64,000 bases of DNA from Macrostomum lignano (lineage: Eukaryota). The notes below the pieces were generated by a model. That model did not search any database. It was given only the letters and a program-made list of their open reading frames with translations, and was not told the origin of the DNA. A program made the translations under genes and the position numbers. Shown here one piece after another: positions 21,090 through 63,693 of the stretch; within the stretch, counting starts at the first letter, position 1, and every line of letters begins with the position of its first letter. The stretch spans positions 1-64,000 of the forward strand of contig NIVC01001971.1 of assembly GCA_002269645.1 (NCBI GenBank), read 5' to 3'.

Positions 21090-21111
21090 ATGTTTTTAAT
21101 TTATGTGCAAG
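21090..21111 (+). CDS. unc-13: unc-13/Munc13, coding exon 1 (22 nt, MFLIYVQ + G)
   Basis: ATG TTT TTA ATT TAT GTG CAA G|GTAATT. The phase-1 donor fits the next exon and aligns with the Munc13 start MSLLCVG-V. Confidence 0.7.
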
Positions 21112-21431
21112 GTAATTCCAGACTCATAGCTGCAAACTAAAAAGTTGAATCAGTGTAGTATATAATTCATGCACTTCATTCATAATAAGACAATTAATTG
21201 CAATCTTAATTATCTTTGCACATTATTTATGCATAATTTATACACGGTCGTAGTTTTGTGATAAGTTTGTTGCTACAAAACTATTGTAATACATTTGTAA
21301 TATATATTGCAGCTCGTTTATTTACATGTACTATTATAAATAAACTATTGTAAAGAGATACGTTTTACACATACCTATTAAAATATTCATGTGATTCATT
21401 TTTTTTTCATTTTTCAACTTCTAATTTACAG

Positions 21432-21573
21432 TACAACGCGCAATTTTGGTCACCAGCCACTGTCCATGGGCTCCCAGCTGTCTAACTTTTGTCAGCATTC
21501 GTTTAAACAAAGTCAAATCTAGCACTGTGGCTTTGTCTGGCATGGCGCCAAATTGGGAGCAGGAGTTTATTTT
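21432..21573 (+). CDS. unc-13: unc-13/Munc13, exon 2 (C2A domain)
   Basis: TTTACAG acceptor, GTAAGT donor. Encodes (V)QRAIL...FVSIRLNKVKSSTVALSGMAPNWEQEFIF, aligning with Munc13 [29 protein letters not shown]. Phase 1 to 2. Confidence 0.88.
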
Positions 21574-22059
21574 GTAAGTCAAAGAAAGTTCATTTGTTTT
21601 TGTAAATGAAAATCAGTATAACAAACTCCTAATTTGACTTTCATATTTTATTGCCATCAGATTTAAATTAAATTTCATGAAAAGGATCACGTAGTATTAA
21701 TACATCGCAAGAATCTGATTTAAAGATAACGCTAAAGTCGATTTGCAAGTCGGCATTCGTAACATCGACACACTGCAAATTCTATTACGAACGATAATTT
21801 TAAAGTATCTTATCAAATTTCACGTGTAGTTATTCCTCCAAAAACTAACCCTTGCGACAATATTTACGTATTTGCATACATGTTGTGTTTTAAGCCAGAG
21901 GAAAAGTCCGGATCGAACCGGTCCGGTGAATTTCAATCAGTCAGTCCGTGAGAGCTGACAAACCTCAAACTAATAGCTACTGTTAATTAACTTGAAAACT
22001 TCTCTCCCTTACCCTTCTCCACCTCTGATTTTTACGCGAAAATTCTTCACAATTTGCAG

Positions 22060-22204
22060 TGAGGCCAGCCCAGCTGACGCTGGCTTAGCGGTGGAGCTAT
22101 GGCGCCTGCCAAGACCGTTAAAGCAGCAACTGCCGGACTACGATGAGGCTCAGAGGCTGGGCTGCGCTTGGATGCCGCTGCATCACGTAATTCAAACGGA
22201 CGAG
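22060..22204 (+). CDS. unc-13: unc-13/Munc13, exon 3 (C2A domain)
   Basis: TTTGCAG acceptor, GTAATG donor. Encodes EASPADAGLAVELWR...LGCAWMPLHHVIQTDE, aligning with EINRLDLGLTVEVWN...VGTVWIPLRTIRQSNE. Phase 2 to 0. Confidence 0.85.
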
Positions 22205-22227
22205 GTAATGCGGAGAAGGAGAGCAAT

Positions 22228-23135
22228 GGGGATTTCAGGGAATGAAGAGGGGAAGAGGGGGAATTTCAGGGAATAAAGAGGGGAAGAAGGGAATTTCAGG
22301 GAATGAAGAGGGGAAGAGGGGGAATTTCAGGGAATGAAGAGGGGAAAAGAAAGAATTTCAGGGAATGAAGAGGGGAGAGGGGGAATTTCAGGGAATGAAG
22401 AGGGAAGAGGGGGAATTTCAGGGAATGAAGAGGGGAAGAGGGGGAATTTCACGGAATAAAGAGGGGAAGAGGGAGAATTTCAGGGAATGAAGAGGGGAAG
22501 AGGTGGAATTTCAGGGAATGAAGAGGGAAGAGGGGGAATTTCAGGGAATGAAGAGGGGAATAGGGGGAATTTCAGGGAATGAAGAGGGGAAGAGGGAGAA
22601 TTTCAGGGAATGAAGAGGGGAAGAGGGGGAATTTCAGGGAATAAAGAGGGGAAGAGGGGGAATTTCAGGGAATAAAGAGGGGAAGAGGGGGAATTTCAGG
22701 GAATGAAGAGGGGGAGAGGGAATTTCAGGGAATGAAGAGGGAAGAGGGGGAATTTCAGGGAATGAAGAGGGGAAGAAGGGAATTTCAGGGAATGAAGAGG
22801 GGGAGAGGGAATTTCAGGGAATGAAGAGGGGAAAAGGGGGAATTTCAGGGAATAAAGAGGGGAAGAGGGGGGATTTCAGGGAATGAAGAGGGGGAGAGGG
22901 AACTTCAGGGAATGAAGAGGGGAAGAGGGGGAATTTCAGGGAATAAAGAGGGGAAGAGGGGGGATTTCAGGGAATGAAGAGGGGGAGAGGGAATTTCAGG
23001 GAATAAAGAGGGGAAGAGGGGGAATTTCAGGGAATAAAGAGCGGAAGAGGGGGGATTTTAGGGAATGAAGAGGGGGAGAGGGAATTTCAGGGAATAAAGA
23101 GGGGAAGAGGGGGAATTTCAGAGAATGAAGAGGGG
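22228..23135 (+). repeat. ~31-bp purine-rich minisatellite
   Basis: Unit GGGAATTTCAGGGAATGAAGAGGGGAAGAGG, period 30-32, starting ~25 bp after the exon 3 donor. Confidence 0.92.
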
Positions 23136-23865
23136 ATCAATGTGGATTTTTGGAATTACGAGGGTCAGAAGGGATTTTAGTGAAAGTAGAGGGAGGGAAC
23201 AGGGGTCTTAGAGAATTAAAAGGGAGACGGTGGGGATTTCGGAAAATGTTGGCGTCTGAGTCAAGAAATTCAAACCTTAAAGGTACAGAGTTTCTTTTCA
23301 AAGCGAAATCAAACACAAAAGTACCTGTTAAATGAAATTTATTAAAAAACAGACTCGTTATGTGAAATGTGAAAAGAATATTTTACTTGCTCTGACCTGA
23401 TGATGATGACTTTGATGACTTTGGAGCTGAGTACGGGGGATCAGGCCGGATCGAGAGGTAAGGAGGAAAAGTCTCGCCATGATGCAGAAAGGAAGCATGA
23501 CATGAGAGAGAGAGGAGAGGAAGATTAAAGTAGGATGGGCCACTGAGAAGCAGCTCCTTAGTCTATCCGGAGTATATAGTCGTACTGCACCTGCGGCTCG
23601 TTAAGGCAACTTTATGCCGAGCAGTTGTTCGACAAGAGTTTAGGGACAGTCGAACTTGCACGACATGAGAGGGGAAGAGGGGGAAGTCTGTCAGCAGAGA
23701 AAAAGTAAGAGGTAGAGAGCAGCAGGTGAGCTGTGTGACTCGTTAGTGCAATTAGTTCTGAACAGTAAAGCTTTTGATACAGGCTCGTGTGGACCAAGGG
23801 CTAGCAGGTTCCATGCGCATTTCTGATCTCTTCCTGTGGATCGCGGGCACTAATGAGATGAGATA

Positions 23866-61206: not shown

Positions 61207-61553
61207 CACTCTCTCTCTTCCCTGTCTCCCTCTCCCTTCCCTGTAGCACTCTCCCTTCCCTGTAGCACTCTCCCTTCCCTGTAGCACTCTCCCTTCCCTG
61301 TAGCACTCTCCCTTCCATGTAGTACTCTCCCTTCCCTGTCTCCCTCTCCCTTCCCTGTAGCACTCTCCCTTCCCTGCCTCACTCTCCCTTCCCTGTAGCA
61401 CTCTCCCTTCCCTGTAGCACTCTCCCTTCCCTGTAGCACTCTCCCTTCCCTGTAGCACTCTCCCTTCCCTGTAGCACTCTCCCTTCCCTGTAGCACTCTC
61501 CCTTCCCTGTAGCACTCTCCCTTCCCTGTAGCACTCTCCCTTCCCTGTAGCAC
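61207..61553. repeat. 19-bp pyrimidine-rich minisatellite
   Basis: Unit CTCTCCCTTCCCTGTAGCA. Confidence 0.92.
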
Positions 61554-61608
61554 TTTATCATACACCGTCTCCCAGCCACATACTCATTTTACCCTTTTTG
61601 TCTCCCGC

Positions 61609-61724
61609 TTTCTCTCTCTCTCTCTCTCTCTCTCTCTCTCTCTCTCTCTCTCTCTCTCTCTCTCTCTCTCTCTCTCTCTCTCTCTCTCTCTCTCTCTCTC
61701 TCTCTCTCTCTCTCTCTCTCTCTC
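61609..61724. repeat. (CT)n microsatellite
   Basis: Perfect dinucleotide run. Confidence 0.96.
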
Positions 61725-62439
61725 CAACCATGACTGTTTGCACTCCTATAGAGGCCCATACAGTTCACTTGATCATACATGAACTTACGCCCCAGCACAC
61801 ATGAATGCGAAGTTTTGCATCCGATATATATGACCTACCAGGGTAGCATAGCTCGGCTGCTTTTACATGTATTCAAAGTCAACAAAAGAATTAGCAGTTT
61901 GAAAGTCTGGTCGCATACTGAATAGCTCTAAGTTCTGGTTGCATTGGTTTACCCTCGTACTATGGAAATTCACTCGCATTTTGTGTATATGATCGATGAG
62001 TAGTGCAGGATGGAGTTGGCCCAACCAGTGAGGATGTCAGTTGCTGTGAACTTTTCCAGGCTAAACAAATTTGTTGAGCCGATGCCAGGAGAGAATTCTA
62101 GCTTAATCCAATAGTTGCCTGACAAAGATTTTTGCTAATACTCGTAGATTGTTATCTGGTTTGGTCGGCAACTCATTTGATCCTCGATGTCATATCTGAT
62201 GTCTACAATAAGCTGATTTAAACTCTTTGTTATTTCTTTAATTTTTAGGTGATGAAGGTAAACGATGGAAACTTTTCTATACTGAATCTTTTTTTGTAAT
62301 TTTTCCTCAAATTTAGTCCTGCGATGCCTTGCGTATCGCATGCGCAGCGCTTTCCTATTGTAACGGTTTATTACTCCAGCCTTGCTGAAGCACTTGCAAT
62401 TGTTAAATGGCACACATCAGGTCCCCAAAGTAGCACGCA

Positions 62440-63175
62440 TCAGGCCCCAAAAATGACACTCATGAGATCCCCAAAATGGCACCCAACAGATCCCCAAAAT
62501 GGCATCCAACAGATCCCCAAAATGGCACCTAACAGATCCCCAAAATGGCACCCAATAGATCCCCAAAATGGCACCCAACAGATCCCCAAAATGGCACCCA
62601 TCAGATCTTCAAAATGGCACTAATCAGATCCCCAAAATGGCACTAATCAGTTCCCCAAAATGGCACTCATGAGATCCCTAAAATGGCACTCATGAGATCC
62701 TTAGAATGGCACCCATCAGATCCTCAAAATGGCACCCATCAGATCCTCAAAATGGCACCCATCAGATCCCCAAAATGGCACCCATCAGATCCACAAAATG
62801 GCATCTATCAGATCTCAAAAATGGCACCCAATAGATCCCCAAAATGGCACCCAACAGATCCCCAAAATGGCACCCATCAGATCTTCAAAATGGCACTAAT
62901 CAGATCCCCAAAATGGCACTAATCAGTTCCTCAAAATGGCACTCATGAGATCCCTAAAATGGCACTCATGAGATCCTTAGAATGGCACCCATCAGATCCT
63001 CAAAATGGCACCCATCAGATCCTCAAAATGGCACCCATCAGATCCTTAGAATGGCACCCATCAGATCCTCAAAATGGCACCCATCAGATCCTCAAAATGG
63101 CACCCATCAGATCCCCAAAATGGCACCCATCAGATCCACAAAATGGCATCTATCAGATCTCAAAAATGGCACCAA
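62440..63175. repeat. 23-bp degenerate minisatellite
   Basis: Unit CAGATCCCCAAAATGGCACCCAT, period 23 (62706/62729), with block duplications. Confidence 0.92.
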
Positions 63176-63612
63176 CAATTCGATTCACTCAACACCGTAA
63201 TTTTTTTTCAAATACGAGCTAAATATGATTTGTTAACGTTATGCATATGCATCACATCCATAAATTTTCTGTTCTGCTTGGATTCGAAATAATAATAATA
63301 ATATATTTGCACAAAGTCTACTAACACATTTTATTCCCACCTATCAAATCGCACCTGTGAGTCAATCAATTTGATTAATTTTATTCAGCTTAAAGCAATA
63401 TTAAAAAGTTAAACTTTAACTTTCTACATACTATTCGCTGGATATTAAGAGTAATTCTTGTGCTTTAAATGAGTCCAATTTGCTATTATCACTTTCGCTT
63501 AAAACTTTTTTTATAATTTAATTTTGCGCACCTGACATACCAGTATATAGCTGCACTAAAATAACATATTGCACTTTCAAAAGTATAAAAATAAAACCGT
63601 CGCCGCACGCAG

Positions 63613-63693
63613 ACGATGGCCGCTCAGAAAAGAAATCAACTTGGCGCGTCTCTGGCCTTGGCCGCCAGGCAGAGTCTCAACGACGAAGAGCTG
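63613..63693 (+). CDS. unc-13: unc-13/Munc13, conserved exon just before the C1 region; gene continues beyond the window
   Basis: CGCAG acceptor, GTGAGT donor, 81 nt, phase 0 to 0. Encodes TMAAQKRNQLGASLALAARQSLNDEEL, aligning with fly Unc13 TMAATKRNAG..ATLNDEEL. Confidence 0.9.

Follow-up and report, generated by a model that had tools for sequence, protein, structure and literature searches.

A probable 5' part of a C2A-type unc-13 gene extending over more than 42 kb of Macrostomum lignano DNA

Introduction

Proteins of the UNC-13 family act in synaptic vesicle priming through their C-terminal MUN region. The C2A domain alternates between a homodimeric form and a heterodimer in which RIM's zinc finger is the partner, and a calmodulin site together with the C1 domain tunes short-term plasticity. 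Isoforms devoid of C2A, namely bMunc13-2, UNC-13S (MR) and Drosophila Unc13B, originate from an internal first exon. Here, we analyzed a stretch of 64,000 nucleotides (nt) from Macrostomum lignano (contig NIVC01001971.1, positions 1 to 64,000 of the forward strand), which is referred to as the window. A preliminary description made from the letters alone had placed an unc-13 gene of eleven exons at positions 21090-63693, largely missed by the track of open reading frames (ORFs). We conclude that an animal unc-13/Munc13 gene of the C2A kind (Munc13-1, ubMunc13-2 or UNC-13L type), which looks single-copy, very probably has its 5' part on the plus strand of this interval.

In the described systems, divergent N-termini arise from one gene and are joined upstream of C1 (PMC7017353, PMC3794949), each of them having its own calmodulin site (PMC7017353). 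The calmodulin motif of Munc13-1 and ubMunc13-2 is of the 1-5-8-26 type with tryptophan at positions 1 and 26 and is located N-terminal of C1 (PMC3794949). Within the rat C2A domain, charge reversal of K32 and E63 abolishes homodimerisation (PMC1472246).

Results

The C2A exons

The first four exons encode the N-terminal C2A domain:

21090-21111, plus strand: exon 1, 22 nt, peptide MFLIYVQ, phase-1 donor, assigned on the basis of the 22-nt first exon of Coregonus
21432-21573, plus strand: exon 2, C2A strands including TFVSIRLNKVKSSTVALSGMAPNWEQEFIF, ending within a Phe codon in phase 2
22060-22204, plus strand: exon 3, middle of C2A with two lineage-specific loop insertions of 5 and 4 amino acids (aa), phase-0 donor after ..TDE
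24269-24398, plus strand: exon 4, end of C2A, GRWLRLDS..GHRLLLGLRWQRLP, phase-1 donor

With E=1e-16, residues 26-146 encoded by the spliced chain align to rat Munc13-1 C2A (PDB 2cjt and 2cjs), and no gap falls at the junction of exons 2 and 3 or at that of exons 3 and 4. Rat K32 and E63 have preserved counterparts in K36 and E67 of the spliced product. A retrieval profile built from the C2A domains of the window and of rat returned 374 proteins from vertebrates, nematodes and hemipterans, and nearly all of the named ones are unc-13 homolog A/B or C2 domain-containing proteins. A second profile was then made from 91 of these proteins, all animal UNC-13 N-terminal fragments, with the window left out. 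When the window was cut at stops in six frames and the resulting 2,313 pieces were searched with it, no more than three matched, and they are the holders of exons 2, 3 and 4. The exon 2 piece was the top match (E=6.7e-7, positions 28-57 of the hidden Markov model, HMM), the exon 3 piece covered HMM positions 59-97 (nt 22061-22204) and the exon 4 piece positions 99-135 (E=9.5e-4). The matches are collinear on the plus strand, and the edges of homology are located 0-3 codons from the claimed splice sites. The spliced product reached 85 bits against the same profile (E=4e-28), as compared with about 56 bits for the separate pieces in sum. For exons 2-4 the chain is beyond chance, and they were recovered independently of the model behind the preliminary description. 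A word-indexed protein search with the N-terminal 260 aa gave no match; the 120 profile matches listed were all at most 256 aa long, and full-length UNC-13 proteins possibly lie beyond the index.

The peptide MFLIYVQVQRA that begins in exon 1 is in register with the conserved MSLLCVxVKKA; the HMMER alignment did not extend into the exon even when anchored with the rat sequence, and the similarity alone is not significant. The loci of Coregonus, Ancylostoma, Pristionchus and Gadus, each taken with 10-kb flanks, ended short of the calmodulin, pre-C1 and C1 exons. In the C2A region, all four introns of the window (4/4) are common with Coregonus unc13 in position and phase. The first exon of Coregonus is also 22 nt long and ends in the same phase (ATG..GGAG followed by GTAAG). 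The phase-2 intron interrupts a Phe codon in both genes, between ..DFMF and EINR in Coregonus and between ..EFIF and EASP in the window, with an identical TT/gt..ag/TGAG layout. The phase-0 intron follows ..SNE in Coregonus and ..TDE in the window, and the phase-1 intron is found after ..FELPL+G and ..QRLP+G, respectively. Ancylostoma shares two of the window's sites, the phase-2 and the phase-1 intron. The 22-nt exon 1 is validated because the intron positions and phases agree with those of Coregonus, including an identical length of the first exon.

The proposed unc-13 identity and C2A domain are borne out by the match to rat C2A, the profile match of the spliced product and the shared introns. 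As judged by sequence comparison, we regard it as proven that exons 1-4 form the N-terminus of a C2A-type UNC-13/Munc13.

Splice structure of the eleven-exon chain

The eleven exons had been claimed to possess GT-AG ends and phases that chain without a break. Inspection of the sequence found all 11 intervals in place, with AG before exons 2-11 and GT after all 11 exons. The donors are GTAAGT/GTGAGT-like and near to GTRAGT, and exon 1 opens with ATG. Summed along the chain, the phases run 1,2,0,1,0,2,2,0,2,0,0. In silico splicing, which had been suggested as a check, yielded 2,334 nt that read as 778 aa in one stop-free frame, and this part of the claim held for 11/11 intervals. Around each of the 11 exons the stop-to-stop frame is short and mostly occupied by the exon itself. 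Apart from a C2 domain and a Pro-rich block, the spliced translation carries the motif W-x3-F-x2-V as well as the strings IDIMPE, PLVSDL, TMAAQKRN and LNDEEL. Exon 11 is followed by 307 nt up to the end of the window, and read-through meets a stop. Neither exact matching of the window's ORFs nor an exact scan of metagenome contigs for exon 11 turned up a contig that overlaps.

Linker and downstream exons

By the logic of the gene structure, exons 5-7 would provide a disordered basic, acidic and Pro-rich linker. Exon 8 may supply a helix that binds calmodulin, and exons 9-11 would correspond to the stretch leading straight into C1 in rat. These exons were assessed with a codon model whose training set was other coding sequence of the window, with a G+C content at third codon positions (GC3) of 0.72, and with an unbiased scan, i.e. 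an enumeration of AG-open-GT segments. The features are as follows:

24582-24673, plus strand: exon 5, predicted basic linker, AG/GT ends, strongest donor consensus, claimed frame with best codon score
27195-27430, plus strand: exon 6, predicted acidic linker DIDNDELDDGSNS, frame exactly delimited by its acceptor TAG on one side and its donor on the other
28705-29952, plus strand: exon 7, 416 codons, predicted Ser/Pro-rich disordered block within a 576-codon open frame
36235-36319, plus strand: exon 8, predicted, W-AEA-F-SL-V with 1-5-8 spacing, candidate calmodulin site, GC3 0.82, best frame, scan rank 11
55968-56029, plus strand: exon 9, predicted, phase 0 in and 2 out, AG/GT ends, best frame, exact in the unbiased scan
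56565-56655, plus strand: exon 10, predicted, ..FFDSIDIMPEVRAKRRAMPLVSDL, AG/GT ends, best frame, weak codon score of 3.7
63613-63693, plus strand: exon 11, predicted, TMAAQKRNQLGASLALAARQSLNDEEL, strong phase-0 donor, exact in the unbiased scan

On the codon model, the claimed frame is the top scorer throughout exons 2-11. For exon 6 it reaches 27, the other frames 2 and 0. Once the long interspersed nuclear element (LINE), the antisense strand of the nested gene and an open frame at 44-47 kb (all three described below) are set aside, the claimed exons top the unbiased scan; exon 7 takes rank 3, and exons 9 and 11 were recovered with exactly the claimed ends. Exon 6 DIDNDELDDGSNS weakly resembles the vertebrate DRDSDYRSETSN in a low-confidence profile alignment and was not recovered in the six-frame search with the 91-protein profile. 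The Pro-rich block announced in the preliminary description is found in exon 7, where it includes a 100% perfect in-frame tandem repeat (42 bp x5, 29431-29641, unit LPPPPLSPPSKPPP, Tandem Repeats Finder). This suggests a recent, possibly length-polymorphic expansion. Taken together, exons 5-11 are above background on the independent codon model and individually not significant; they are predictions, which are plausible and reasonable but unproven.

In the solved chains of rat Munc13-1 (7t7c, 5ue8), GITSALA-SSTLNNEEL is followed by KNHVYKK and then C1. The exon 11 peptide GASLALAARQSLNDEEL is identical to this pre-C1 peptide at 9/17 positions and, like the exon, stops at ..EEL; matches that arise by chance within the window score just as high. 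PLVSDL presumably precedes the pre-C1 segment in rat as well.

Weighing of the chain against alternative readings

Several results speak against reading the whole chain as unc-13. The C2A domain is unusually divergent: its core has only 36-45% identity with every sampled relative, two loop insertions (5 and 4 residues) are present and the otherwise invariant KGLIWD is not kept. The codon score of the exon 7 frame is ambiguous (178.6 vs 177.6), and exons 5-11 have no independent homology support. In six-frame scans of the window, exon 11 ties with chance matches to the rat pre-C1 peptide and exon 8 is outside the top five matches to the calmodulin-binding peptide of 2KDU. Position 26 of the exon 8 motif is Asp, with Phe at 25, and Trp is absent. 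PDB searches with exons 8-11 gave no match, and a word-indexed protein search with them found no relatives; here, too, the profile matches listed were all at most 256 aa long and full-length UNC-13 proteins possibly lie beyond the index.

The resemblance of exons 8 and 11 to rat peptides was dropped as evidence because chance matches elsewhere in the window equal or beat it. Two earlier claims are affected. Of the calmodulin-like motif in exon 8, the 1-5-8 spacing is present; Trp 26 is absent and the similarity to 2KDU is not above chance. Likewise, the strings of the conserved segment ending in ..LNDEEL are found in exons 10-11, and their similarity to rat is not above chance. With regard to the extent of more than 42 kb, exons 1-4 stand by homology and intron sharing; the reach to 63,693 draws on splice consensus, phase and codon usage only, because the resemblances of exon 8 and exons 10-11 to rat are no better than chance.

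The divergence of C2A, which exceeds that of any sampled relative and includes the missing KGLIWD, would fit a chain of open frames put together by chance, or a pseudogene in decay. This is opposed by 778 codons without stop or frameshift, conserved intron positions and phases, retained codon bias, the profile match at E=4e-28 and the preserved key interface residues. We consider such a reading extremely unlikely for the chain as a whole, and for exons 1-4 it is already contradicted.

Alternatively, only the C2A exons (1-4, perhaps up to 7) could be real, exons 8-11 being a wrong path through 34 kb of intron and the true downstream exons being partly different or beyond the window. Exons 8-11 are indeed small, with 62-91 nt each, and resemble rat peptides no more than expected by chance; the codon score of exon 10 is weak, and introns of 6-20 kb hold many open AG..GT segments, such as the weakly positive ones at 38422-38520 and 47832-47891. 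On the other hand, exons 8-11 are GC3-rich islands (0.67-0.82; known coding sequence 0.72) amid AT-richer introns, each of them scores best in the claimed frame, the ends of exons 9 and 11 are exact in the unbiased scan, their phases chain, and exon 11 ends with ..LNDEEL where rat has ..LNNEEL before KNHVYKK. A wrong path is judged improbable, and we regard it as plausible that exons 8-11 are real parts of the unc-13 gene.

A large same-strand frame upstream of exon 9

One more feature on the strand of unc-13 may belong to the gene:

44606-47191, plus strand: candidate alternative first exon or independent nested ORF, 862 codons, predicted disordered, PMATQPAPS x9

This open frame directly follows the tail of the LINE and runs to 47308 (about 900 codons). 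Its codon score is 385 in frame versus 125 and 206, and the PMATQPAPS repeat corresponds to 27 bp x8.6. Between the first ATG at 44606 and GTAAGC at 47192, the single GTRAG of the region, lie 862 codons. This donor has phase 0, which suits exon 9, and a splice to exons 9-11 stays open. No convincing acceptor was found for the frame. Among 1.84e9 representative proteins it has no relatives save low-complexity matches on the PMATQPAPS repeat.

On this analysis, 44606-47191 could be an alternative first exon giving rise to a C2A-less isoform, as in Unc13B (ub/bMunc13-2). We rate this as a possibility to be held tentatively, and we rate it that high because the family is known for divergent N-termini joined upstream of C1. 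If true, both C2A-containing and C2A-less UNC-13 would be made from one gene in a lineage that is distant, by C2A identity, from vertebrates, nematodes and insects. The other reading is that 44606-47308 represents an independent single-exon gene nested on the same strand, which encodes a disordered protein and is not a first exon of unc-13. This is consistent with a stop of its own 116 nt past the donor-like site and with the lack of relatives. Neither does the depletion of internal GTRAG argue against it, as it is not significant (expected 1.4, P=0.24), and the phase match would occur by chance in one of three cases. What does count against an independent gene is that the frame lies on the same strand as unc-13, that a single consensus donor in phase 0 is located near its end with an open splice to exons 9-11, and that alternative divergent N-termini of the family join upstream of C1 (PMC7017353, PMC3794949). 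Weighing both sides, we give the nested gene about an even chance and consider an independent nested ORF somewhat more likely than an alternative first exon.

Intron contents and surroundings

The unc-13 introns had been described as host to a nested gene, a LINE, short interspersed nuclear elements (SINEs) and most satellites. This was borne out by matches to ARIH proteins and reverse transcriptases, by the similarity of the SINE pair and by tandem arrays, which make up about 34% of the 21090-63693 span. The elements are:

30387-33118, minus strand: nested antisense Ariadne-type RING-IBR-RING E3 ubiquitin ligase gene in intron 7, at least two exons
33260-33481, minus strand: tRNA-derived SINE copy 1 in intron 7, with A box TAGCCCAGTGG and with GGTTCGATTC, both read on the minus strand
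37731-37966, minus strand: tRNA-derived SINE copy 2 in intron 8, assigned by pair identity and minus-strand box sequences
39529-44490, plus strand: LINE in intron 8 with ORF1-like Cys-rich frames, ORF2 at 41386-44439 (reverse transcriptase and RNase H) and an (AAC)n(AGC)n tail

The E3 ligase gene matches ARIH2 and ARIH1 with E=1.6e-17 to 3e-17, RING1 and IBR being located in 31334-33118 and RING2 in 30387-31154. ORF2 of the LINE matches the reverse transcriptases of R2 and LINE-1 ORF2p with E of about 1e-15 and RNase HI with 8e-4. The two SINE copies are 78.5% identical over 247 bp. Neither tRNA genes nor Rfam families were found in the window.

A 15-bp minisatellite of about 115 copies occupies 34254-36198 and ends 37 nt upstream of the exon 8 acceptor. 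Its minus strand reads as long ORFs that are spurious, such as 34330-35904. Upstream of the gene, at 16357-16815, there is a (CTAA)n array with its complement, (TTAG)n, in intron 8 (55080-55366). These arms are perfectly complementary over 183 nt at a distance of 38 kb and are probably one microsatellite in two orientations. A degenerate telomere-like array GGTTTAGGTTAGGGTTTGGG.. with a period of 41/6 is located at 19137-19493 and precedes the unc-13 start codon by about 1.6 kb. Further upstream, a gene on the plus strand at 11338-15176 comprises open frames of 846 aa and then 251 aa, with 66% GC, polyQ and Gly/Ser runs. The 846-aa ORF had no informative PDB match; by eye, its sequence looks like that of an ankyrin plus fibronectin-III protein.

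Discussion

If the gene structure is read as proposed, the part encoded in the window would be the regulatory N-terminus of the protein. By analogy with rat, the exon leading into C1 would come next, beyond the window, and the C2B, MUN and C2C exons would be expected downstream of it. Judging from the family, vesicle priming at synapses would be the role of the full protein and would depend on its MUN domain. The huge introns would have gathered minisatellites, the LINE, the SINEs and the antisense RING-IBR-RING E3-ligase gene.

The findings leave the known mechanism of UNC-13 unchanged, and their main value is for annotation. Because the C2A exons of unc-13 are tiny (the first has 22 nt) and the introns long and repeat-rich, they are overlooked or broken up in ORF tracks and even by curated pipelines. 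The public annotation of Coregonus suidteri CM072233.1 has a model of 196 aa with C2A only and an adjacent model of 1729 aa with C1-C2-MUN-C2. This split is the same kind of annotation miss as in the window. Whether the species is taken to have the form of the priming factor that binds RIM and homodimerises depends on a correct model.

Comparison with known UNC-13 systems

Vertebrate Munc13-1 (UNC13A) and ubMunc13-2 (UNC13B, ub) likewise have a C2A from residue 1, with the equivalents of K32 and E63, and a disordered linker as predicted for the window. In the predicted later exons, the window would also be like them in the 1-5-8 hydrophobic spacing upstream of ..LN(D/N)EEL, the segment that precedes C1 in rat. 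However, the C2A core of the window is only 36-41% identical with that of vertebrates, whereas the vertebrates compared (cat, lamprey and hagfish) share 75-81% among themselves. The vertebrate KGLIWD and FELPFD are not kept in the window, which in turn has the two loop insertions and, in predicted exon 7, a long Pro-rich repeat block. The window also lacks the extra intron of Coregonus at residue 18 and the Trp at motif position 26 of Munc13-1 and ubMunc13-2. As judged from the sequence, the lost KGLIWD loop may alter the coupling to RIM.

With bMunc13-2, UNC-13S and Unc13B the window would have in common, if the frame at 44606-47191 is used, a large, poorly conserved and disordered N-terminus that is located within an intron of the C2A isoform and joins the common exons upstream of C1. 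This candidate N-terminus has no sequence similarity to any known N-terminus.

The same N-terminal C2A is also present in UNC-13L of nematodes, including C. elegans, and in hemipteran unc-13. Nematodes show the highest C2A identity with the window (43-45%), and Ancylostoma shares the phase-2 intron in the Phe codon of EQEFIF/E and the phase-1 intron after ..ELPF, whereas the middle intron of nematodes is shifted relative to the window. No close relative of the window C2A was present among the fragments returned from the protein collection. C2A identity is 54-58% between vertebrates and insects and 44-51% between vertebrates and nematodes, and the three groups are mutually 44-58% identical (47-58% without the comparison of hagfish and nematode). 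The window C2A is placed slightly outside of this group because it has 36-45% identity to each of its members as compared with 44-58% among them. The gene is an ordinary member of a well-known family from a lineage that is thinly sampled in the searched collections.

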